Of a DNA stretch of 64,000 bases, positions 5,523 through 37,365 are shown piece after piece. The position numbers were made by a program, and so were the translations under genes. The notes beneath the pieces were generated by a model. That model worked only from the letters and a program-made list of their open reading frames with translations. It had not been told where the DNA came from and ran no database searches. The first letter of the stretch is position 1. Every line of letters begins with the position of its first letter. Source of the DNA: Ruditapes philippinarum. Taxonomy: Eukaryota. The stretch lies in contig NW_026866770.1 of assembly GCF_026571515.1 (NCBI RefSeq), positions 310,001 to 374,000 of the forward strand, written 5' to 3'.

Positions 5523-6140
5523 CTACCTCCTTCTCCTTCTTCGCTTTTTATCTTTACCACTCGCAGGTTTTTCATCACTTTCAGATGCCGGGCTATTTAC
5601 CTTTTGTTCTTGGCTTGCAGGTGAATCTTTATCTTCATCATGTCCTGAGCCATTTGAAGGAGCTGAAACAGATGATTTGCCTGAACCTTCAGATTGCAAT
5701 TTGGAAGCACCTTCAGCATCGTCATCACCTTCTTTATTCTCCTCGTCGGAGCCTTGTTTTCCTGACTTCTGCTTATTTTGTCCGCAGTTGTTAGACGGTT
5801 GTTCTGCTTTCTCTATTGCTTTCAGGACTTTGACAAGATGGCCAATCTTTCCGCTCACCTTGATATTCACTTCATATTCCTGGCTCTTAGGTGCCGTGCA
5901 AGTTTCTGCCTCGTTTTCGTCTCCTTTCTTTCCGTCACCAACAACTGGGCTGGGTGCGGCTTTTGCATCATCTTCATTTTGCTTATTTCCGCCATCACCG
6001 TCATCAGCAGCTGATTCGGATGCGAGTTTATCATCAGCTGAACCGGAATCTTCTTTTTTTTCAGCGGAGTCGCTTTTCCCGGCGTCTATGCAAACTGCAC
6101 ATATTACGACGGCAATTGATACTATTATCCACAGACGCAT
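5523..6140 (-). CDS. Secreted low-complexity D/E/G/S/K-rich protein, 205 aa, C-terminal KKRRRRRR; unknown family
   Basis: Hydrophobic signal peptide MRLWIIVSIAVVICAVCIDA. Kozak-like CACC-ATG. A pyrimidine tract + AG ends 7 nt upstream of the ATG (likely 5'UTR intron). Higher GC than the flanks. Confidence 0.8.
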   Translation of the reverse strand: MRLWIIVSIAVVICAVCIDAGKSDSAEKKEDSGSADDKLASESAADDGDGGNKQNEDDAKAAPSPVVGDGKKGDENEAETCTAPKSQEYEVNIKVSGKIGHLVKVLKAIEKAEQPSNNCGQNKQKSGKQGSDEENKEGDDDAEGASKLQSEGSGKSSVSAPSNGSGHDEDKDSPASQEQKVNSPASESDEKPASGKDKKRRRRRR

Positions 6141-21354: not shown

Positions 21355-24300
21355 TTAGTATTGAGCTCCAAGAGGGACAAGAAAAATCATTGTAAATATA
21401 ACTTGAACAATAACAAACACTGCGAGAAAGAATAGATCTAAAACTTCAGCGATGTACTCCCACGTGAGTTCTTTCTTTGGAGAAGATGATGATGCACTTG
21501 ATGCAGCTGATTGCACACGAGAGGGTGCTGCTGATTGGAAAACGGACTCTGCATCTAACGAAGGACGTGGTTCCTGAGCAGAAGCACTTGATCCAGATTC
21601 TGAAGAGGATGGTTTACTTGAAGAGTTACCTGACAAATACCCAGAGGATGGCGCAGAAACCAAACCTGTTGGCCCATTCTTTTCATTAGACTGCTGAAAC
21701 CCAATTTGTTGCGAATCCGATTCTGGATTGCCTTGAACCTTTAATATAGAACTGACATCATAAAATGCGTTGCTTTGATCCGGCTGTATTTCATTAGTAT
21801 CCAAGTTTGCATTATGCATTTTGTCTAAGCCCTTAGTGACACTATTACCGATTCCGATGAGCCCAGACCCCTGTTCCGGGTTGAATCTATTTCGTAAATC
21901 ATTTGTTTCGCTTACCTTTGTAAAATGTAATCCTTGAACGGTCTCTTCACTTGCAAGTGTAATCATGTCGTCATTGTCTATGAGATGACTGTCTTCATAA
22001 TCAATTTGTGAATGTTTCTTTGTACATTTTATTGAAGAGCACGTGGGCAAGCGATGCCATAAATCTCGCAGACATTGACACCTTATTTTCGGACATTTCG
22101 GACATCGCCGCCAGACCTTGCATGTGATAACTTCAAGAATAATATGAAAGTACTGCGGAACTTCTTCCTTACTTGGATTCAGATGCAGTCGGAGTAAAAA
22201 GACATTAATAATGCTAAGGAAGACACTAAAGGATAGCATCACAATAACATAAAAACACAGAATAGACATTGGTGAAGAAACCTCAGGCATAAAACTCATC
22301 AATGTCTGCAATAGAACAACAAAAGAAAGAAAACACGTGATTCCAAAACCGACCCTAGACCCGGAAGCAGCTGGTAACAAAAACAGAAAACCTGTCAATA
22401 AACTTAGAAGCAGAACCGGAAGTACTATTACCAGCGCTAGAAATAACGGTTTTCTTTTTATTGTTATTTTGAAATCTACGTAGAATCGGGTATTGTTAGG
22501 ACCAATATATGTTTCTGTCGATGTGGAATCAACGCCCCATGTTGAGCTCTTCTCCATGTTTGCTGTATTCCATTCATTTGTTAAAGGCTCTAGTCTCAAT
22601 TCATCGATACCTCGGTTCCATGGCGTTATTGTGAGCGTGCAAGATTGCTTATCAAATGGGTAATACGTCATATCCGGTGTACACGCAGCATTTATGATCA
22701 TGCGTGGATACCATTTACAATATCCGGAACTGTGAAGGAAACAAAAAATAAAGTAAAACCGATGAATTATCTTTAAGTTAGCAGAGGGGAATCATTGTTA
22801 AAAGTCATTGCCACATGGTTTACATTCTTTCAGGAATATTTATAAAATTATGTCCTTCACTGGTTCTTTGAAAGACTTTTTATATGGCATAAGGAAAAGG
22901 AATCAATAAGTGTTGACAGAATGCATTCTGCTATTGTTCTTTTAAAGCTTGAAAAAACAATCATTTAAAAAAACAACATTGACAATCTTATTTTCATGTT
23001 GTCACAAATACGCCGGAATTTTCTAAATGACAGAAAATCACACAGAAAAGTTGAAAATGACCATTTAAATTTATATTAGGTAATTTCACTGTGTATGGGT
23101 GGCCACGTGGTATAAAATACCTAAATAAATACATTTATAAAATTTCACAGCTGCACAATTTATTTCTCACCTGACATTGTATCGAATTTTATACGTTTCG
23201 TCCCCAATTCTTTCAATTGAGTCCACGGAGCTCATAAGTACGAGATTTGGTGACCAAATCTGATCATACCCAACAAATATTGTCTCCTGGGATCCCATGA
23301 ATGTTGTCCCAGTTAGTGTTTTTACTTCATCAAGCCACTCCATCTTCATGCTAGCCACTAACTGTATCACTCCGCTCACCGCGTCATAGTCCATTATGGC
23401 GAATAGGCTCAAACCTGAAACCAGACAAATTTCTTTTTTTTTCTTTTTCTTTTGGATTATAAATTACATCGGCAATTTAAAGGTCATATATAGTGACCTT
23501 CTAGCTTTACTGGTTTTGGAAGAGTCTATCCGTGCTTTATTTTTGTCGGGAGCAAGTACCGGAGTAGAACTATTATTCTTCCGGAAGTTTGCTAGAGTCC
23601 TTCCTCTCATGAAGAAAATTTATAGCTGCCTGTGTGATTCGGACCTTTATTAATGAGAGGCACGAAAGTGATCAGACAAATTTCAATAGATATAATAATC
23701 CCATAAAGAATTTCATAAACACGTTGATTTTAATAAGGAATTGTGTTGGGCCGGTTGTTTGATTCATGGGAATATTATTGGACATGAATGTTTGAATCTT
23801 AGGACAAAATCAAATTAATCTATTGAAGTTCGATTGCGACAGAAGCTTAGAGTTTAAACTATCTTAATCATTGTCAGCACAATTTTTGGGCTTATCAGTA
23901 TCGGTATTGTATGAGGAAACGTTGCTAAGACCATAGACGTACTCGAATTTATGACACCTGAGTGGTGTGGCAGACACCTTAACCATTATACCACGGGTCC
24001 TCATTTTCCTTGATTAGTTTTATTAATGAGTATTTCTTCAACCAACATTATTTCTTGAAAAGTAGAGTGTGTCGTTTTATATTATTTATGCATACACAGT
24101 TTGCCCTCTGCAAACCGACCCTCTGTAGAACATTTACCTCTTTTTAAAGACTTCTCTTAAGAAATACCGGTCAGAAACGACCAAAATCTTTTTCTCCGAA
24201 AGGGTTGTGCTGGCTTTTGAAAAGAATGCACTGTACAATAATTACGTATATTTTTATTTCAAATAAAATATACATGTACTGACAAAACAAATTAAAGCTT

Positions 24301-25228
24301 GTTTCGAGGCAATTTATATGCAAAATTAATTATTATTAATAGGCTTTATCAATAAATAAAACACAATAAAACTCACCCATATAAACCGTAACTGGTCCCG
24401 TGGACAGGTCCTTGGGCATAACATCTGTTCCGCCAACGTTTCCATTGCCTAACTGTAAATGGAAAATTAAAACAAAGCGACCTCTCATTTCGTTGTTGTC
24501 ATGAATTTTGAGAATTCTTAAAGTTAAAATATATAAGTGCGGCATGCAATGAACGCATCCATCCATACAAATACTGCGTCGCATATTTGCGTCTGTGACC
24601 TTTTCAATGCGTTAACACTTTGATTTTGATTAAATGTTTTCATGTAAGAATGCCATCAGGCATTTGGTTTAACTCCCGTCGACTTACAGAAAGTCGGCGG
24701 TTCAGTCAGTGAAGTTCCAAGATCGGAACTAACCATATAAGGAAGGGAGTTAATGTAGAACCTTGCGAAACCCCCGCTTAAAACAATTTTGGCTGAAAAC
24801 AAAGGTCTTCTCCCACATGTGAACCAAGAAACGTCTACACTTCAATGTTTAATCATAAGCTTATGGTGGAATAAAAACCGGTCTCTAAGACCTTGGATTT
24901 TGAATTGGAACTATGTCGCAGTCGTGGCCATGGTTCATCATACATTATGTACAAACAGCAATACATTCTGGTTAGTTCAAAAGGCGAAATCGATTGAAAT
25001 TTGATAGTTAATTACTGAAAGAAGTTATGGAAGTAATTGTAATGTAAGTAAAGGGATTTTAAAGGGAGATAATCATACAAAAAGTAAAAATCTTACCTGA
25101 TAAGCCGATAGAAGGGTTTCAAAGTCGGCTTTTACATCATTATACGGTACTACACTGGAACATTCGCTGAATAACATTAACAAAACGTAAATCGTCCATT
25201 TGCTTGTAATAATATATCTTAAATTCAT
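21355..25228 (-). CDS. Atypical Cys-loop ligand-gated ion channel subunit (nAChR-like), paralog A, ~608 aa, 4 exons
   Basis: Exons 25228-25097 (MNLRYII...DVKADFETLLSAYQ), 24452-24377, 23414-23171 and 22729-21355. GT-AG, phases 0/1/2, total 1827 nt. Cys-loop CTPDMTYYPFDKQSC, KRKP pre-M1, four TM helices. Confidence 0.9.
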
Positions 25229-26774
25229 TTTTTGTTTTAACAAACAAAACCGGTACGGAATTGAATCTAGCTTTCAAAATAGTTTTTATACGTATCTAAA
25301 TTCTAACAGACAATTCGTTATTAAACATTTAGTACATCGCAGAAGTGTTGTATATGTCAATACAATGTCATATCACTAATAAATATCATAACAAAGACCT
25401 GACCGTAATTCAAAATTAATAGGTAACAGTGTCATTAATTACCAATAGCTACTTTAAATATTATCTTTTTATCTAATGTTATCAATCATCAGACGGCTTG
25501 GCTTATCTGTCACAGTAGTTTGTTTAGATCAAAAATTGGAACGGATTGCTTGATTGCAATTGACGTAAAAACATTGATTTTTGGCAAAACATAAATCGAA
25601 TAGGCCACAGACGCAGGATATGCACCGCGCTTTTTAATCTTTTTGTTGTCATTATTCTCGTTCAAAAAGCGTGCTTAATTTGTTTTTTATAATAATTTTT
25701 TACCTATATCTTACAAGACTTTGAAAAAAATGCACAGAAATAACTGCTTCTTTGTTTTAAAACTGACGACATGATTGTATAATTGTACGCAAAAAATGGA
25801 AACTAAAAGATCTATTAAAAATGCAAAGTCACTGGTTTTATTAGAAGCCAGTGTGGCTTTTTTGTAATGATTTGAAAAACAACAAAATTTGGTTCGAACA
25901 TCCTGGTAATAGTGTTACAGCGTTAGTTATGATGTACCACGTGACACATTCATTTGCACTTCTACCTTTTACTAGCAAACACTAAAATGCTTCATTGTTT
26001 TAATGCATTGATAAAAATCATAACCGATGTATCTTAACAGAACAAATTAGTATCTGACGGTATAATAAAAATATATGTATACCGAAAAATTAAACTTTGA
26101 CCGGTTTCTAAACTAGGAAAATATATAAAATTAGGATTATGTATTTTAAGATAACCCGCTTTGATAGTCAGAAGTCCAGAAGTCGAACAAACAATATGTA
26201 CAAGACCAGACATATGCGTTCTCATTCCCGGGTACAGGGTACATTTTTAACCGCGTGGACCAGTCGCTTTCCGCAACAATCATCCTAACTTTATTTCCAC
26301 CGCGTTTCAATTGGTGCAAATTCATTATAAATTAAATTAACACCGACCGTGACCCGTATGAACAATACAGCTCATTAAAATAATATTAACGTATCATTTA
26401 ACACAACAATCAACGTTTTGTTTTAATACCAGTTCGATAACACTGATATAAAGTACTAAAGTTGACGATCAAATAGGGTTTTGTCTGCAAACATTTTTTT
26501 ATATTATCTTCGGATCAAAACATTTTGCAGGACAAAAGGCAATCACATCTTTTTGATGCATACAGCGGGACTAAATTTTAAATACCTTTTTTTATTTGGA
26601 ATAGTTTTGGAGATTTATCATAAAACGTTTTACTTCATGATTTCGGTCAATAATCTTACAAGTAATTTACGTCAACAAAGTGGGCGGGCTAATATATAGT
26701 TTCTTAATTATATCATCGCTTATGGAGAGTAGGCATAATTACCTGTAATTTAAACGACTTTCTGATATTAAAAC

Positions 26775-28310
26775 ATGGAGAAACAACTTGTTATTCTTTT
26801 AATTTTTGGAATAAATTCGTTGATACAGACGACACAGTGTTCATCATGGACTGAAGTGAAGGCGGAGTATGAAAAACTTTACAATGCCTATTCGATGAAT
26901 CAGTTCGAATCTTACGTAAATACGATCCCTTCGAACGATTTTACACAACCGCTAGATATTAGACTGGAATTCGAAATGAACTCTCTTGCCGAATATGACG
27001 CAGTGAATGGTGCGTTAGATGTGATCGGGAGCCTATCAATGACCTGGACAGACAGCATCGGCGCACTGGGCAGTGTGACCTTTGATACGGGAAAGATCAA
27101 TGAAGTAATGGTTCATTATAAGACAGTTTGGACTCCAGTCATTGTGCTGATAAATTCGGCTGATTCCATACAACGAGTCGGGGACGAAACATACAAAGTA
27201 AGATTGAATCTCGGAACTGGTGAAGCGAACTGGAAACCTCGAATTATAATCAAAGGTTCCTGTTCTCCGGACGTGACGTACTTCCCCTTTGATCAACAGT
27301 CGTGCACATTCACTTTTCAGCCTTGGTATCTAACGAAAACGAGGCTAAAATTGTCGGTCGCTTCAAATGAATGGAAAATGGACAGGTACGACAAAAGCGG
27401 CGTTTGGGACATCGAATCGACCGATTCAAGTACTTATATTTCAGGTGACTATTATTTTGCTAACTTTACTGTAACATTCAATCGGGAACCAACGTACTTT
27501 ACAGTCAACTTAGTTTTGCCTATTTTGTGCTTATCTATGTTAAGCGGATGTGTATTTCTTCTTCCTGCAGCATCAGGTGAACGTATAGGGTTTGTCATAA
27601 CCTGCTTTCTGTCGTTTATTGTCCTTTTGCAGACGACAATGACGTATTTACCACAAGCGTCTTCGCCGATGTCTCTTTTGTGCTATTACGTCATAGTTAT
27701 GATGCTTTTTAGCGCCATATTAACCTTAATTACTGCCATTCTTCTGAGGGTCTACCACAAGCCAAAAGGCGAGGATGTTCCGAGATGGCTTATACATGTT
27801 TTAGAGATTATCAAATGTATTAAATGTCGGCGCGTTTGTGGAAAAAAGGCAAATTCAGTAGAAGATGGTTCTTTCTTTCCCGGCAAATCCTCAAAGAAAG
27901 GCGGATCGTTAAACCAAATGCCAAAACGGACAGTCTTTAATGCAGATCGACTGTCATCAGTAACCGGATATAGCTCTCCGAAATCACTAGAACAAATGAA
28001 AGTAAAAAGTGTTACGAGTGCGGACTCTTTCGCGTCATCAAGCATGGCTAGCGTGGCAGATGACGTAGATAATGTTAAATCTGCAAGTAAATCAAGGAGC
28101 AATCGCGAAAAAGTAAAAGTAATTGCTTCTGGACTTGAAGTGGCGACGGAATCGTCAGAATACTATGAGGAAGATGATGAAAGTACCATAGAAGAAATTG
28201 ACTGGGAATTGATTGGCCATCTTTTGGATACTTTCTTTTTACTCGCGTTTATCGGAGTACAGGTTGGATTCAGCATTATATTTTTGGTGCCTATTGGTAC
28301 TCGAGCGTAA
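26775..28310 (+). CDS. Atypical Cys-loop ligand-gated ion channel subunit (nAChR-like), paralog B, 511 aa, intronless CDS
   Basis: Signal peptide, WTPVIVL, Cys-loop CSPDVTYFPFDQQSC, M1-M3, M2 PAASGERIGFVITCFLS, M4 after IDWELIGHLLD. Confidence 0.95.
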   Translation: MEKQLVILLIFGINSLIQTTQCSSWTEVKAEYEKLYNAYSMNQFESYVNTIPSNDFTQPLDIRLEFEMNSLAEYDAVNGALDVIGSLSMTWTDSIGALGSVTFDTGKINEVMVHYKTVWTPVIVLINSADSIQRVGDETYKVRLNLGTGEANWKPRIIIKGSCSPDVTYFPFDQQSCTFTFQPWYLTKTRLKLSVASNEWKMDRYDKSGVWDIESTDSSTYISGDYYFANFTVTFNREPTYFTVNLVLPILCLSMLSGCVFLLPAASGERIGFVITCFLSFIVLLQTTMTYLPQASSPMSLLCYYVIVMMLFSAILTLITAILLRVYHKPKGEDVPRWLIHVLEIIKCIKCRRVCGKKANSVEDGSFFPGKSSKKGGSLNQMPKRTVFNADRLSSVTGYSSPKSLEQMKVKSVTSADSFASSSMASVADDVDNVKSASKSRSNREKVKVIASGLEVATESSEYYEEDDESTIEEIDWELIGHLLDTFFLLAFIGVQVGFSIIFLVPIGTRA

Positions 28311-28381
28311 ACAAAATACAACGAAGACCTACAATTATATTGTATAACTGAAATCATGTATTATGAGGTTATTTTACATTC

Positions 28382-28510
28382 TTAAGTACAATATTGATTT
28401 TTATTGGACGAGTACATACCTTTCAAAACTATACTGGACGGGGCGCTAGCCGAATCCGATATAGGTTTTGCAGCTGTGTACGAGTCCAATAAAATCAGTA
28501 TTGTTCTTAA
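28382..28510. mobile_element. ~130-bp palindromic element in the presumed 3'UTR of paralog B
   Basis: TTAAGTACAATATTGATTTTTATTGGAC is the near-exact reverse complement of GTCCAATAAAATCAGTATTGTTCTTAA. Confidence 0.65.
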
Positions 28511-31500
28511 ACATGTTTAGTGACATCTTTATTTCACACCACCATTTTGTAATTTTGAGAGAACTTTGTTATTTCAATTACAATAAGGATTTGATATGGG
28601 CAGTGAAAACGATCTAGATGGTGTGCGATATGGATATGATATGAATCTTTTGGATTCTGGAAATGAAAATGAGGCTATATTGGGTGTAATATGCATTTGA
28701 TATGTACCTTTTGGACTCTGGAAATAAAAACGAGGCTATAAGGGATGTGATATGCATTTAATATGGACATTTTGGACTCTGGAAATGAAAACGAAGCTGA
28801 ATTGATTAGATAAGATCCAATAATGATTTCTTTTGAAACATCCCGTGATGCAAATGCTGAAAGTGTACTGGGTGTGGAATAAACAGTATTCAATCCCTGA
28901 TATGAAATAGCCTTATCTGATATGCGAAAAAACATCGAGCTAAACAAATCTAAAAATGATTTTAAAAACGTTAAAGTTTACTTATTGAAAAAAGATTGAA
29001 TTCTATATTAACGAGAAAAATAACTGATTGTACGGGCTGATAGTGAAGTCAAATATTTCAGTTTATCATAATTATGTTGATAGTATGGAAGTTTGAGTTA
29101 TTTTTGTTTTATTACATGTACATTTAATTTTACCTACCTAAGATGTACTTCATTTTAACCACAATGAAAAAGTTACCATTATCCTCTATCTGTACAAGAT
29201 TACATAGGTTTGGAATGTGTTTACTTTGCAATAAAACTTTTATTCATTCAGAAATAATAGCACATGAGCACTTCATTCCCGTATAATTATATCAACCCCC
29301 TATTTCTTTACGTTAGGGTACGAAGGAGGTCGGGGATATCGTGCCTATTTTAGTGATCTGTCGCGGTTTTTGTTTCAGTAGAACACGACGCTCAAATGGA
29401 AAGAAACGCTCACTTTATATTGTTTGGTAAACATCCATTTATAGATTGGAAAACAATGTCTTTAATATGCAATAATAAAATCATTTATTGATTTTTTTTC
29501 TTCTCTAAATTTGAATGTATATTTTTGTTACATTTTAATATTTTTTAATAATATTCCATACATTTTGATTTTCAAAAATATTTCTGTTAAACATATACTA
29601 TGCTCAAATTTGATAATAAGAAAATCTTGATAGTTGCTACACAGTTTCTTTGTGAATATAAAATAAACATGTTTTGACTTCATATAAGGTAGATATTTAT
29701 GTTTAAAACTCTAAACACTATAGGTGGTCACAATATGAATACATAGTGTCATTTTTAAGAAAAGACCAACTTAGACCTGTTAGACCTGTAATAGGGAACG
29801 CAGCTTCCCATACATAGTTTATTCATTTTTATTCATATGAGACATTTCCAGTAAGAATTTCATAGATTTCAATAAATTTATGTTATTAAAATATTTTACT
29901 CAAGATTGAGCACAGTTTATCTTTAATGGTTTTTATTCACGTCTAGTTTGACAATTACATCTTAGTCAGTTTTGTTTTAGATGTTCAGTTGTGTCAGATG
30001 ACTTATTATTTGATGCATGTTTCTTTTGTTTAGACTTATAGACATCTTTATACATCTGTATAAATGCATGCTTTATACAATCTTATGAAGCCGAACTTTT
30101 ATCAAAAACAAATGTGTTTTGTTAATTGTCATCAAAAATAAAAAAATGTATTGCTTGTTATATACACCACATATACCATGAGGGGAATATATCATACGAG
30201 TGAGAAATAAACAAAATAAAAATCCATTTTAACTTGTCATACCTGTAACATGTATTGTTTTGTTTTCGTCTTTCACCTGTTTATTAAGCCGTTTAGTTTT
30301 TTTGATTCTCTCGATTCCTTTATTTATGCTTTAATATAAATGTAATAGTACTTGTACCTAGGGAAGGACCATAGATAATGTTGATATAAATCTTGGTCCA
30401 ACCCTTTGGCATCTACATTTTATTTATTCTTAAGATCATGATGTTAAATTGTGATAATTTATCATGTACAAATAAACAATAAAATATTATTAAAATTAAA
30501 AAAAGCTATTGGTACAATACTAATTGATCACCAAAATAGAAGACATTATTTGGGCGAAGTCCGTCTGAGAACAGTTTGGTTTCTTGTAAAATATACAGAG
30601 AAGAACTACATATGTATTTAAATATGGATGTCTATTGGCCATTAGCTAAAATCAATGGCCATTCTAAAATTAGAAGAAAAAAATTGAAAGTACGAATGGC
30701 GTCTTCGATAGAATGAGAATTTACATTCAGAATTACTGTCATTATAAAAAAGCGCTGAGCTATTATTCTTCATGTATTCAAAAGTCCGAAATGAGTTATG
30801 AAAAAGTATCTCTTTAAAAGATACTTCTTTCAATAATAATTATAAATACTGGCATTTGAATAAATTTTTAATGCATATTAATCGTGTTTTACAGAAACAT
30901 GATAATTCTTTTATACAAATTTAATGAAAAAAAGAAAAAAATGTAAACTCAAGACTTTTCAGAAAGATATATAAGAGCTTTTTTTTTATTTCATATCCAA
31001 TTTTATTCCATTACTTCACTTGTATACAGTGACAATTCAAGTCATCTGTACAAATTAGCCTGCTTATCAATATTAATAAGAAACTGTCATATTTTTACAG
31101 TATTCCCTTTGCAAAAAAGTGCGGACAACTCTTTATAAGAAAGGGAATCATTTTCATGTGATACGCTTGAGTGTTCGCAAGTTCACTTTCTTTCAAACAT
31201 GTCCTCGATGCTTGTATGTGGTCGCACGATCAAAAATCTTTAACAAAATGGCAACATCCTTAGAAGTGTATTGTTTCAAAATTGCAATGTTCTTGACAGA
31301 AACTAATTCCTAAAAAGGTCCAGTTGCATGAATTTTGGGTCAATGATCACTATTACTAAAGTAAGGGAAAGGTCGTAATCAAATAAACGTATAGGGTGAA
31401 AAGTACGAACACTCTTTTTATGAAATCGGAACCACAACTTTGCGTTTCAATCTTATCCACCACAGTCTGCATGATAATCATTGTCAATTCTTTTATATAC

Positions 31501-31676
31501 TTTTTTTGCAATGTGATATTTCCATAGAAACGGAAGTAGCAGTTCGCACATGCGCAGTCTGCGTCCGACAAAAAGCAAAGAAAACGAAAGAATAAATTTT
31601 ATCAGTAGATCTACTCAACAACTACATTAACAATTAAATGATTAACATTAGGTTTAGAATAGTTTCTTTTGATAAA

Positions 31677-33026
31677 CACGGGGGAGGAAGTGTTACACGA
31701 AGGATGGAGTTCTTATGATAACTTGTTTGGAGTTCTTATGATAACTGTCACGGAGTTCCTGGAAAACGTTACGGATTTCTGTGGAAAACTTTTCTATATA
31801 CTTGGAGAAATCGCGTAAAAAATGGTTATTTTTAAATTTAAATGGGGAGTTTGAGGTGCAAAATTAAACTTTGACAATGAAGCTTGCCCTACATATTGTA
31901 TTTTGTTTCAGAAAAAATCTTTTAGTCCATATTTTGTCGCCTTTTAAAAAAAAATCTGGTAGTCTTGAGAGAAATAACCGAATTACTTGCTAATTCGTAC
32001 ATATTGACCTTTTCATTTGTGATCTTCTTCGTTGCTATACTTTATTACCTAATTATAATGGAGAGTTGCAAAAATAAAGCCCGGGCTAATAAATTTATAC
32101 CCGATTTTTCAAATGTTACGGAGTTCTTGCGATAACTCAAAATATGTCCTGGAGTTCTTATGATAACTTTTGTTACTGCCAGTGTGTTTTTGTGCTTAAT
32201 CACGGCACGTTTAAGCGTATTTTATTAGTCAATAAGTGTTTAAATCATAACGAAGCATAGTACGCTTATCATTTGCACAAAAATTTGGTTATATAACGTT
32301 GGTTTTAATCGTGTTTTCAGTTCAAGAGATATTTTTCTTACCTCCGTTTCTTGTGTTTTCGCACAAATTTAATTAGGAACTAAAACACGATCAAAACCAT
32401 CGTTATATAACCAAATTTTTGTGCAAATGATAAGCGTACTATGCTTCATAATGATTTACACACTTATTGACTAATAAAATACGCTTAAACGTGCCGTAAT
32501 TAAGCACAAGAAACACACTGGCAGTAACAAAAGTTATCATAAGAACTCCAGGACATATTTTGAGTTATCACAAGAACTCCGTAACATTTGAAAAATCGGG
32601 TATACATTTATTAGCCCGTGCTTTATGTTTGCAACTCTCCACTATAATTAGTTGATTATGTATAGCAACGAAGAAGATCACAAATGAAAAGATCAATATG
32701 TACGAATTAGCAAGTAATTTGGAAATTTTTCTCAAAACTACCAGGTTTTTTTTTAAAAAAAAGGCGACGAAATATGGACTAAAAGATTTTTTCTGAAACA
32801 TAATACAATATGTAGGGCAAGCTTAATTATCAAAGTTTAATTTAGCACCTCAAACTCCCCATTTAAAGTTAAAAATAACCATTTTTACGCGATTTCTCCA
32901 AGTATATAGAAAAGTTTTCCACAGAAATCCGTAACGTTTTCCAGGAACTCCGTGACAGTTATCATAAGAACTCAAAACAAGTTATCATAAGAACTCCATC
33001 CTTCGAGTAACACTTCCTCCCCCGTG
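31677..33026. mobile_element. 1350-bp foldback element: ~650-bp inverted arms, CAC...GTG termini, 5-bp TSD ATAAA (Transib/RAG-like or Chapaev-related, non-autonomous)
   Basis: Left arm 31677-~32323 (CACGGGGGAGGAAGTGTTAC...), right arm ~32377-33026 (...GTAACACTTCCTCCCCCGTG). ATAAA at 31672-31676 and 33027-33031. Repeated GGAGTTCTTATGATAACT boxes. Confidence 0.85.
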
Positions 33027-34014
33027 ATAAATAACCATAGTAATACTCGAAATGACAAAACTATCTTATACATGTATACGATATGACGCCGACGTTATCG
33101 GAATCGTTCCGGTTTTAACCAAAATTGGCAATTTAAGCGGCGTCACCTCGTGAAGACAAATGACACCGAATTGCACTGTGTATGTGTAAGGAGCTGAAAC
33201 AGTTCTCACCAAGTGTTTCCAGTAAAAACCTAAAACATAAAGTAAAACTTACTGGTGACAATGAAAGAAAGACGGCTTCAACACAATAGCGAATGAACCA
33301 AGACTTCTGCAAAAGTTGTGGTCAGTATTAACACGACATCACATTTTGATGATGTCAAACACAATATGTAAAAGACAATAGAATAGATGCAAGTTTATAG
33401 TTATGCACAAAATCAATGACCAAATAAGCATAATACGAGTAGCAATGAAAAAAGCAATACAGTATAAAGCAAAAAGCAAATTCCGTGTCATTAAGCAAGG
33501 TAGAAGCTTAATAATTGAGTGATTTAAGTTTCAATTTCGCCAAGCAAAATGGAATAAATGCAGTAATTCTGTTCCATAGTTTTAAAAATGTGTAATTTTG
33601 ATCTACTTATTATTAAGTTTATAGCAATTAATTAAATCTTTTTTTAATTGGAACATTTCGTGCCCGACATTTTACACATTCTTTTCAAAGCATTGCTTAA
33701 AAGTCGTAAATCAGTATTGCCGACGGATTAACATCGACACCGTTTTAAACCCAATACACCTGTGATGTGTCTATGTATTTCATCGATGGGCCATATAAAA
33801 TGATTAATAAAGATAAAAAATATTCTAAAGGAACTGCGATTAGGTTATCACGCATCTTTTTGATCTACAAACTTGTTATTGGCATTGTTGAAAAGACAAA
33901 TTACTCGACACATTCTTACAGTATCAAAATGTATCACACATTTAAATAATAATGTTTAATGTAAGACAATTGATCCACATTTTATTTTGTTTTATACCAA
34001 AGTGATAATAAGCA

Positions 34015-37000
34015 ATGGCTAAAATTCTGTATTTAAATTCTCTTGTAAGAACTGACGGAATGTGCAATTTTCTAGTGATTTTAACTTTCTTAAACATTTT
34101 CATATCACCAGCTTTTTGCCAGACCTATGACGACGCAAAGGCCGTGCAGGAGACTTTGCTGAACTTCTATTCAAACAATAACACACAGCTGACGAGTATC
34201 ATACCGGTCGAGGACCAGTCTACCGCGTTGAGCGTTATACTCACAATGCACCTATACTCAGTAGACGGGTTCAACGCAGTAACGGGACTGGTTGAGATAT
34301 CCGGAAGTCTGTATCTCGAATGGAAGGACGAGACTAGGGCGGCTTCCATTGGGAACTATGTCTTTCCATTCAGTCCAGAAGGTCAGTACCAATTTTTTGA
34401 TGATAACTATTCAATCATTTTTGTATATGTTTATTTTCTTGTTTGCACTGTTATTGTTTAAGTGCATGGATGCATACAATAATATATAATAACTCTGTAA
34501 TTGGAAAGAAACCGACAAACACCACTTTGGATTGTTCTCGTCTTTTTTCTGCCAGCGACAACATTTCAATCATTCCAAAACACCACTGGGATAAAAAACA
34601 AATATAAATTGTTCCGCCTAAATTTTGACCTATAACAGGTTTAAGTAAATCAAGTATTTCGTGCAAAAGAACAGTAACTTATTAATTCATATCATTAAAA
34701 ATTTTAAACATAGAAAAACAAAGTCTGAAAAAATAGTTTACTAACTCAAATCAACTTCTGATGAAGAACATGAAATAATTTTACAACAAACCATTGGTTT
34801 TATATGTTCAAACTAGCCAATATGATTGGAATAAGTACATTTGTATACTGTTTTTATGTTAAAATTCCGGAAATAATTTTTTCATGTTATAATTTGTGAA
34901 CAATATAAATAAATGTGAAAATAAATGGAAGGTCAAATAAATTTTCTAGTCTGGAACTGACACACTTAAAGTCTTATAATTTTCTTTTATTATTAGGTTA
35001 CTCCGTTCGTCTGCCGCAGGAATCGGTTTTTCGTCCATCAATCCGCTTAACAAATGCTGTTGATTCGGTCAAGCACATTGGCGATCCTGCATACAAAATA
35101 CGTTACCATGTATACGACGGGAGAATGATGTGGCAGCCGAAAGTGATCATGAAAGCAGCTTGCAAACCGGTATGTTGAATATTATCCATTGACCGCCAAA
35201 AATGCAGCTTTGTATATACTGCATGGGGCTATACAACATCAGAAATCATTCTCGACAGTGCACAGTCTGAATGGTACCTTTGCGATTACAAAACCCCAAT
35301 GCTGGTGTGGGGCCTAATTGAAACAACGGTTGAAAGCTACGAAGTTGATGATCAATCCTACATGAGATTCCTTTTCACAATCGAGCGCCAACCGTTATAC
35401 TTTGTGATGAAATGTTATATTTCCCATACTGCTTCTGTCTGTTTTGACTGGTTTCGTTTTTTCTACTTCGGCGGAAAGTGAGGAGAGCGCATTGGCTATT
35501 CGCTGACATGTTATCTCTCTTTGTTCAACACCACTTTGGATTGTTCTCGTCTTTTTTTCTGCCAGCGACAACATTTCAATCTGCCAAAACACCACTGGGA
35601 AAAAAATAAACATAAATTGTTCCGCCTGAATTTTGACCTGTAACAGACTTAAGTAAATAAAGTTTTTTTGCGAAAGAACTGTAACTCATTAATTCATATC
35701 TTTAAAAAAAAGTCTGAAAAAATAGTTTACTAATTCAAATCCTCTTCTGATGAAGAATAGATCATTTTACACCAAACCATTGGTTTTGTATTTTCAAACT
35801 AGCCAATATCACCTCACAGAATATTATTTGAATAAGTATACTGTTTGAAATAGATACTTTGTTAAAATTAGTGAATAATATAAATGAAGGTGACGGTCAA
35901 GATTAATTTTCTCGTCTGGAGCTGAAGTCTTATAATTTTCTTTTATTATTAGGTTATTCCGTTCGTCTGCCGCAGGAATCTGTTTTTCGTCCATCAATCC
36001 GCTTAACAAATGCTGTTGATTCGGTCAAGCACATTGGCGATCCTGCATACAAAATACGTTACCATGTATACGACGGGAGAATGATGTGGCAGCCGAAAGT
36101 GATCATGAAAGCAGCATGCAAACCGGATGTTGAATATTATCCATTTGACCGCCAAAAATGCAGCTTTGTATATACTGCATGGGGCTATACAACATCAGAA
36201 ATCATTCTCGACAGTGCACAGTCTGAATGGTACCTTTGCGATTACAAACCCAATGCTGTGTGGGGTCTTATTGAAACAACGGTTGAAAGCTACGAAGTCG
36301 ACGATCAATCCTACATGAGATTCCTTTTCACAATCGAACGCCAACCGTTATACTTTGTGATGAATGTTATATTTCCCATACTGCTTCTGTCCGTTTTGAC
36401 TGGTTTCGTTTTTCTACTTCCGGCGGAAAGTGGAGAGCGCATTGGCTATTCGCTGACATGTTTTCTCTCTTTCGTATTCATGCTACAGACTGTGATGGGG
36501 TTTTTACCTCATACCGCAGATCCGATGTCGCTTTTTTGTTTCTATGTTATCATAATGATGGTTGTAAGCATTGTTGCATGCATACTAACAGTTTTAATGT
36601 TGAGATTACATCTTAAACCGGAAACAGATAAAGTACCAAAATGGCTCCAGAAATTTGTGCGTTTCATTCGCTGTGGACTATGTAAAGCAGCATGGCGGAA
36701 GTGTCGGAAAAAATGCAAAAGATCAGTCGACAACTTACCTGTTGAAGGTGAGTGTTTAATTTTTCTAAATTTATTTGGTAAATCTCAAAATTTCTCAAAC
36801 TGCCTTTTACATGTCTGTAAATTTACTGTACATTTTACGACATTTGTATATATTTATAAACTATTTATATGAAATATAGAAATTCATCGGAAATATATGA
36901 GAATTTTGAATATCAAAATAAGTTGAACGAATTGTTAAAAATGGAGCCTTAAATTCCTTTTATTAAAATAAAAAACACAACAAAAAACAACAGCCAACAT

Positions 37001-37365
37001 AAAAAACAGAAAGATAAATTAAACGTAAAACGTTTTCTTTGATTTTTGGAGTCTCCCTTATCTTTTCAGAGAATGCAAATGCACAAGTACAGATTCGGAG
37101 ATCTTCAGTTTCAGTTCAAATGGTAGCATTGTCAACCTTCCGTCGGATTGAATCAGCCGGTGCCAATTTAGATACCTTGTTCGAAAATGCTGTTACAGAG
37201 GCGGATGACGGTGTAAGCGTAATCGATGACGATGAGCAGGAGGAAGAAATGTCGTGGACAAATGTCGCCGACGTCCTTGATACATTTTTCTTTCTTGTGT
37301 TTCTAGGGGGACAAGCTACTCTGTCTGTCTTTTTCCTAGTGCCCTTGGTGACAGGGCCATCTTAG
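34015..37365 (+). CDS. Atypical Cys-loop ligand-gated ion channel subunit (nAChR-like), paralog C, ~485 aa, 3 exons
   Basis: Exons 34015-34381, 35953-36747 and 37070-37365 (phase 1/1, total 1458 nt; the ATG at 34060 is an alternative start). Cys-loop CKPDVEYYPFDRQKC, M2 PAESGERIGYSLTCFLS, M4 after MSWTNVADVLD. Confidence 0.88.
34997..35525 (+). pseudogene. Frameshifted partial duplicate of paralog C exon 2 (tandem duplication or assembly/haplotype artefact)
   Basis: ~34518-35525 is repeated at ~35526-36475. The first copy has several 1-2 nt indels and ends within M2. Confidence 0.8.

Follow-up and report, generated by a model that had tools for sequence, protein, structure and literature searches.

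Three old nicotinic-like subunit genes of the intron-poor bivalve expansion, probably non-cholinergic, in the clam Ruditapes philippinarum

A 64-kb stretch of the genome of the Manila clam Ruditapes philippinarum (hereafter, the window), which lies on a 388,801-bp contig, carries three Cys-loop receptor subunit genes of the nicotinic family, arranged as a neighboring array between positions 21355 and 37365. We consider it probable that these genes, numbered 1 to 3 in the order of their coordinates, are old paralogous members of the published intron-poor expansion of nicotinic-like genes in bivalves, and that their products form pentameric channels gated by a ligand other than acetylcholine. 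The full architecture of a pentameric ligand-gated channel subunit is present in all three, and gene 2, like the large exons of genes 1 and 3, scores above the cut-offs of the Pfam domains PF02931 (Neur_chan_LBD) and PF02932 (Neur_chan_memb). An earlier note on this DNA had placed three subunits resembling nicotinic acetylcholine receptors in this interval, and both the Pfam searches and the alignments described below agree with that placement. Genes 1-3 most likely encode conserved orphan subunits of probably cation-selective, non-cholinergic channels. A tblastn search of the window with gene 2 as the query found no fourth intact copy, and whole-genome searches were carried out over the 1.41-Gb R. 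philippinarum genome. Spliced models of genes 1 and 3 were used for the alignment and the tree, and database searches were conducted exon by exon.

Pocket and pore residues of the three subunits

In an HMMER alignment of the gene 2 product with the human alpha3 subunit (6pv7_A), Ser86 occupies the position of the loop-D Trp and Ile126 that of the loop-A Tyr, and Trp184 corresponds to the loop-B Trp. Within loop C, which is 6 residues shorter than that of alpha3, Tyr221 aligns with Tyr190 and Phe228 with Tyr197, and the dipeptide Ser223-Gly224 stands in place of the vicinal Cys pair. The Cys-loop of this protein is bounded by Cys163 and Cys177, with Glu269 at the −1′ position of the pore and Leu279 at 9′. 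When aligned with alpha4 (8ssz_A), gene 3 exon 2 has Thr at loop A and Trp at loop B, and it carries Val-Asp in place of the Cys pair while both loop-C Tyr residues are kept. Gene 1, as judged from an alignment of 92 sequences, also has no loop-C Cys pair and presents the same pocket picture. In that alignment, the loop-D residue is Ser in all three genes, and the loop-A residue is Met, Ile, and Thr in genes 1, 2, and 3, respectively. The Cys-loop cysteines are separated by 13 residues and Leu is found at 9′ in each of the genes, with Leu279 invariant in the family alignment. The alignments to alpha3, to alpha4, and among the 92 sequences thus uphold the description in the earlier note, according to which a 13-residue Cys-loop, the loop-B Trp, M1-M4, and L9′ are present throughout, and the loop-C Cys pair, the loop-A Tyr, and the loop-D Trp are missing from every copy. 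A 7-residue insertion after loop A, which appeared in one alignment, proved to be an artifact when compared with a second.

Counted over the aromatic box, three of the five positions are kept in genes 1-3 (the loop-B Trp and both loop-C residues), and two of the five are lost together with the disulfide. On the principal face, one of the four aromatics of the alpha type is gone, namely that of loop A, and loop C provides a Tyr paired with either Tyr or Phe. None of the three genes has the vicinal Cys pair or the full set of principal-face aromatics that characterize alpha-type subunits, and the loop-D Trp of the complementary face is likewise absent. As had been recognized previously, both pocket faces are remodeled, in that the residues for acetylcholine recognition have disappeared from the principal and the complementary side. 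It is therefore fair and reasonable to suppose that the ligand is a molecule other than acetylcholine, and gating of genes 1-3 by acetylcholine itself would be improbable. To say that the acetylcholine site has been lost is nonetheless an overstatement: the absence of the Cys pair, the loop-A Tyr, and the loop-D Trp agrees with this description, but the persistence of three aromatic-box positions does not. Because both loop-C aromatic positions are kept, the pocket is better regarded as remodeled than as erased.

These features suggest a mechanism in which the subunits would assemble as pentameric cation channels and be opened by some small molecule, distinct from acetylcholine, that binds in the remodeled pocket between subunits, where the loop-B Trp and two loop-C aromatics would still be on hand after the departure of the loop-A Tyr, the loop-D Trp, and the Cys pair. 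The pores of genes 1-3 have Leu at 9′, Gln at 16′, and Thr at 17′ and have no acidic residue at 20′. At −1′, genes 2 and 3 have Glu and gene 1 has Ser. A Gly-Glu-Arg ring at −1′, together with the absence of the Pro typical of anion channels, would assign genes 2 and 3 to the cation type; gene 1, with its Ser at this position, is more likely to be a partner subunit. Directly after M3, all three proteins carry a basic stretch rich in Cys (three residues in gene 2, eight in gene 1, and five in gene 3), which in gene 2 spans residues ~347-355 (window positions ~27810-27840) and which could represent a palmitoylation or metal-binding motif.

The best matches to these proteins are canonical subunits, represented by human alpha3, alpha4, alpha7, and muscle alpha1 (E 3e-38 for alpha3; Z 27 for alpha7), with which they share the Cys-loop, the loop-B Trp, both loop-C aromatic positions, M1-M4, and Leu 9′. 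They differ from the canonical subunits in the absent vicinal Cys pair, the shorter loop C, and the replacements of the loop-A Tyr and loop-D Trp, and also in an M2 that contains Cys at 7′, Phe at 8′, and Gln at 16′ but no acidic residue at 20′. An AlphaFold2 model of gene 2 (mean pLDDT 76, with disorder only in the intracellular loop) gave its best structure alignment with human alpha7 (Z 27.2, 28% identity), ahead of Alpo4 (Z 23.6, 19%), squid CRB1 (Z 21.9, 19%), and octopus CRT1 (Z 20.4, 22%). The top PDB matches of gene 2 in Foldseek and phmmer searches are canonical nicotinic and 5-HT3 chains only, and neither CRT1 nor CRB1 occurs among its 60 best PDB sequence matches. The distances to CRT1 and CRB1 relative to alpha7, as measured by structure alignment and PDB ranks, argue against membership in the cephalopod chemotactile receptors (CRs), and any functional likeness to those receptors would be convergent.

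A structural precedent for nicotinic-like channels with orphan ligands is provided by Alpo4, an orphan nicotinic-like receptor of the annelid Alvinella pompejana that does not respond to known transmitters and whose ligand is presumed to be non-cholinergic (PMC10338036). Like the clam genes, it is a lophotrochozoan nicotinic-like subunit without the loop-C Cys pair. Unlike them, it keeps the key aromatics according to its authors (PMC10338036), whereas the clam genes are devoid of the loop-A Tyr and loop-D Trp, and its structure-based identity to gene 2 is only the 19% given above.

Phylogenetic position and the genome-wide expansion

A maximum-likelihood tree of 79 proteins places genes 1-3 inside a 56-row clade with 100% support. 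This clade is composed only of heteroconch bivalves (Ruditapes, Mercenaria, Mya, Dreissena, Mactra, and the freshwater mussels Sinanodonta and Potamilus), and it is marked by an M2 signature of Thr-Cys-Phe-Leu-Ser-Phe at 6′-11′, in which Cys falls at 7′ and Phe at 8′. Matches from scallop, mussel, and oyster have an ordinary M2, and the M2 type of the clade is confined to heteroconch matches. Most members of the clade also share the loop-D Ser of the three genes. Within the tree, genes 1, 2, and 3 fall into three separate orthogroups: gene 1 pairs with a Mercenaria protein, gene 2 with another protein encoded on the same Mercenaria chromosome, and gene 3 with a Mactra protein and related sequences. 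The orthologs of gene 3 are 89, 78, 77, 72, and 62% identical to it and have the same M2. Since each of these orthogroups is separate and has orthologs in other clams, the array is old rather than the outcome of a recent burst. The nearest relatives elsewhere in this genome are about five genes with 34-39% identity. A sister subgroup in the same clade (P0030 and P0036-P0042, with locus L001 at C2284:160453-161415) has products of 820-875 aa, about twice the usual size, and this length is conserved across several clam species.

A search of the genome with PF02931 yielded 727 first-look candidates, and all 150 of the 150 that were scored were significant, so that the genome holds at least 150 such domains. 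Most of the ligand-binding-domain matches lie in uninterrupted frames of 420-450 aa that are adjacent on shared contigs, forming tandem arrays. A census of paralogs obtained 50 loci, from which 42 distinct intron-poor paralogs were examined, and the loop-C Cys pair, the loop-A Tyr, and the loop-D Trp are absent from every one of the 42. The pocket losses therefore mark the whole expansion rather than this cluster, and the bivalve-type expansion in R. philippinarum is probably non-cholinergic as a whole, which would make the annotation “acetylcholine receptor subunit” misleading. Gene 3 exon 2 is 100% identical to an NCBI R. philippinarum protein named “acetylcholine receptor subunit beta-type lev-1-like.” Canonical nicotinic genes with introns are clustered at ~122-315 kb of another contig, C5624 (loci L021-L025, L037, L038, and L048), and several of these are of the alpha type, with the vicinal Cys pair and an ordinary M2; a conventional cholinergic toolkit has therefore been kept beside the expansion.

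Introns interrupt genes 1 and 3 at places that do not correspond to those where exons of the canonical C5624 genes begin. Intronless members, tandem arrays, novel introns, and retroposition have been described for the nicotinic-like expansion of bivalves (Jiao et al., 2019; PMC6896357), and an expansion of Neur_chan_LBD proteins has been reported for R. philippinarum (PMC11592408). The non-canonical introns of genes 1 and 3 fit the course of retroposition, tandem duplication, and later intron gain (PMC6896357). In several respects the array is a typical product of this expansion, as it combines one intronless gene with two that have few introns at non-canonical positions, its extracellular domains are highly diverged, and its host genome harbors the large complement of domains counted above. 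It departs from the expansion in two ways: genes 1-3 are old paralogs with orthologs in other families rather than recent species-specific duplicates, and they possess their own M2 type and a conserved loop-D Ser, a residue-level state that the literature consulted does not describe. The expansion itself, its intronless members, tandem arrays, and novel introns are already published (PMC6896357; PMC11592408), and the cluster alone is no new kind of system. A 2026 preprint (PMC13174522) has sorted 3,586 mollusc sequences into 15 clades, among them clades with changed ligand-binding positions, some of which include bivalves. The divergent MolluscaGenes clades defined there (CR-like, Cys-less, and nAChR-D) resemble the present genes in that they are nicotinic-type mollusc sequences with substitutions at binding positions.

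Ligand specificity and competing roles

Identity among genes 1-3 is 32-38% in the extracellular domain and 53-60% over M1-M3. The earlier note had interpreted such a contrast as the expected result of ligand diversification; the contrast itself holds, but a gradient of this kind is normal for the superfamily and is no proof of diversifying ligands. Loop C is the least conserved stretch across the clade and the most variable one between orthogroups. In the gene 2 lineage, 9-11 of the 13 residues of the loop-C segment (residues 220-232) are identical to those of unionid proteins whose extracellular domains are only 35-37% identical overall. Variants among gene 2 transcripts comprise 18 synonymous and 5 non-synonymous changes (pN/pS ~0.08); none of the 8 variants in the extracellular domain alters an amino acid, and all 5 replacements are situated in or beside the intracellular loop. 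Gene 2 is under purifying selection, and signs of rapid change are absent both from its loop C, as compared with the unionid proteins, and from its within-species variants. Polymorphism of this gene is very high, amounting to at least 23 variant places per 1.5 kb in transcripts from a few runs.

The behavior of loop C points to a specificity that may be fixed within each orthogroup and able to persist for a very long time, a pattern that would place these proteins nearer to transmitter receptors or conserved co-receptors than to fast-evolving environmental sensors. Since loop C is variable between orthogroups and deeply conserved in the gene 2 lineage, a single constant ligand for each orthogroup, be it a signal from within the animal or a cue that is ubiquitous, would fit better than fast-changing environmental tuning.

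Orphan genes of the nicotinic-like kind number one to several hundred in bivalves, and we know of no proven bivalve chemoreceptor family. The earlier note had proposed that the cluster constitutes a special chemotactile-like receptor system, which would act peripherally in the epithelia of the siphon, mantle edge, palps, or foot and would be gated by environmental molecules. We regard this as unlikely, even though a number of observations can be cited in its favor: the pocket is remodeled on both faces, the genes are intron-poor and clustered, and loop C is the extracellular part that varies most between orthogroups. There is also the precedent of the cephalopod CRs, the molecules of bivalve chemoreception are largely unknown (PMC11682238), and the same hypothesis has been raised for divergent mollusc clades, with a CR-like clade that includes bivalves and with chemosensory roles proposed without tests (PMC13174522). 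The chemosensory proposal thus extends to a further locus a hypothesis that had already been put forward. The losses on which it was founded are common to every sampled member of a family of hundreds (the 42 other paralogs) and therefore single out no sensory subset. The genes are moreover old and have conserved orthologs, and their transcripts occur in 19 runs belonging to 9 studies, a hint that they may be expressed in tissues that are often sampled.

Direct comparison with CRT1 and CRB1 leads in the same direction. The clam genes share with the cephalopod CRs the nicotinic fold, the loss of acetylcholine-site hallmarks, and an intron-poor, clustered organization, as well as the cation-type pore motif in the case of genes 2 and 3. 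Unlike the CRs, which lie farther from gene 2 than does alpha7 (Z 20.4-21.9 and 19-22% identity vs. Z 27.2 and 28%), the array contains introns in gene 1 (three verified) and in gene 3 (two predicted), so that only gene 2 is intronless. In addition, the outer pocket of octopus CRs is diversifying (bioRxiv 10.1101/2025.10.28.685082), whereas the loop C of gene 2 is deeply conserved and its extracellular domain is purged of replacements. The label of a chemotactile-like sensory system finds no support here, and the observations speak mildly against a receptor that is CR-like and fast-diversifying.

A somewhat more doubtful alternative is that the three proteins are accessory, non-binding subunits that co-assemble with canonical alphas into acetylcholine-gated heteromers and tune conductance or localization, in the manner of vertebrate beta1 or alpha5/beta3. 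The genome does encode canonical alpha subunits with the Cys pair; the nicotinic fold, Cys-loop, loop-B Trp, and Leu 9′ have been kept; and gene 1 has no −1′ Glu, a condition that some accessory subunits tolerate. However, the canonical subunits encoded by this genome are very unlike the three proteins in M2 and the M2-M3 region, and hundreds of genes far exceed what a few canonical alphas could use. The conservation of loop C within orthogroups further suggests a pocket under selection, which would be unexpected for a non-binding interface.

We assign a similarly low probability to the proposal that the heteroconch-only clade is an independent bivalve invention of ionotropic receptors for non-cholinergic cues, in which some orthogroups serve as peripheral chemoreceptors, possibly including gene 2 and its head-to-head neighbor, gene 1. 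If true, this would constitute a second origin of nicotinic-derived chemosensation besides that of the cephalopod CRs.

Several points weigh against our preferred reading of genes 1-3 as non-cholinergic channel subunits of the bivalve expansion. Ion selectivity is deduced from M2 motifs, and the loss of acetylcholine gating is judged from residues alone, with three of the five aromatic-box positions still in place. The distribution of the clade was obtained with word-based searches, which can miss distant members, and the census is a non-random sample of 42 genes from ~35 places that were chosen by similarity searches. Finally, the splice sites of gene 3 are predicted only, and its intron carries a decayed exon copy with an intact acceptor. 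The cluster nonetheless represents a readily testable case, given the verified model of gene 1 and the expression of genes 1 and 2, and the orthogroup of gene 2, in which the pocket loop has remained stable ever since the freshwater mussels diverged, is a good candidate for de-orphanization.

Gene models, transcripts, and other features of the window

Genes 1 and 2 are both transcribed, as revealed by contigs of two public RNA runs (X1 and X3) from different studies, and the transcripts of gene 1 are spliced at GT-AG introns. Gene 1 is encoded on the minus strand in four coding exons. Exon 1 (25097..25228) provides the start codon, signal peptide, and N-terminal helix and is connected through the GT..AG RNA joint 24452/25097 to exon 2 (24375..24452), a segment of 78 nt that encodes the beta-1 strand and is bounded on its other side by the joint 23412/24375, both joints being present in runs X1 and X3. 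Exon 3 (23171..23412), which carries the loop-D Ser and the loop-A Met, is defined by the joints 22729/23171 and 23412/24375, and exon 4 (21355..22729), supported by Pfam and by its RNA joint, encodes the Cys-loop, loops B and C, M1-M3, a long Ser-rich intracellular loop, and M4. The introns at 22730-23170, 23413-24374, and 24453-25096 are skipped in the RNA contigs and are all of the GT..AG type. Joining the four RNA-verified exons produces an open frame of 608 aa, and the 5′ end of the transcript extends at least to 25343. The extent given previously for this gene was too short, since the contig joints carry the coding region to 25228 and reveal the 78-nt exon 2 that had been missed. A PDB search with the 80 aa of exon 3, a query that is too short for this purpose, returned spurious matches to designed armadillo repeats along with one weak match to the acetylcholine-binding protein AChBP.

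Gene 2 (26775..28310, plus strand) is a single intronless open reading frame of 511 aa that is recognized by Pfam and covered by RNA contigs at a depth of 27-58. Genes 1 and 2 are arranged head-to-head, with ~1.3 kb between their transcript ends, and are detected in the same RNA runs. Their shared upstream region (25344..26683, no strand assigned) has zero RNA depth over 25401-26600 in X1 and X3, as the contigs stop at 25343 and resume at 26684; since these 1.3 kb are uncovered, the signal represents RNA rather than carry-over of DNA. This arrangement suggests a shared bidirectional promoter and the possibility of co-assembly of the two products. Two further raw-read runs were set aside: X24 has no reads on this stretch, and the coverage of X22 is thin, with most of its reads running into unlike sequence.

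Gene 3 is modeled on the plus strand with three coding exons. Exon 1 (34015..34381) extends from the signal peptide to just before loop A, includes the loop-D Ser, and ends at a predicted GT donor at 34382. Exon 2 (35953..36747), which is supported by Pfam and by the alpha4 alignment, encodes the loop-A Thr, the Cys-loop, the loop-B Trp, loop C, and M1-M3. Exon 3 (37070..37365) begins after a predicted AG acceptor and encodes the end of the intracellular loop, M4, and the stop codon, with a tblastn match to the M4 of gene 2. When these exons are joined at their consensus splice sites, the resulting frame is open over 485 aa. The first intron contains a tandem repeat (34543-35522 vs. 35553-36472; families 950-1010 bp apart, 74-99% identity), and in the upstream copy the first 550 nt of exon 2 are duplicated, together with an acceptor that appears intact. 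This frameshifted copy of the start of exon 2 (34997..35522, plus strand), inside a repeat of ~1 kb, has stops and frame changes in all three frames. The differences between the repeat copies are largely indels in homopolymer length, and the duplicate may be a real, decayed one or may be an assembly artifact in which an unpolished haplotype was placed in tandem.

It is very improbable that any of the three genes is a decaying, functionless retrocopy, an idea to which the long tree branch of gene 3 and its decayed intronic exon duplicate might lend themselves, as might the observation that little or no expression is commoner among intron-poor than intron-rich copies (Jiao et al., 2019; PMC6896357): none of the three frames is interrupted, splicing is seen for gene 1 and transcription for gene 2, the pN/pS of gene 2 is low, at ~0.08, and gene 3 has orthologs of 62-89% identity with the same M2.

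Elsewhere in the window, the minus strand of 5523-6140 contains an open frame of 205 aa that is unrelated to the receptors and that combines a start resembling a signal peptide with an acidic, Lys-rich body of low complexity and a C-terminal run of Arg.

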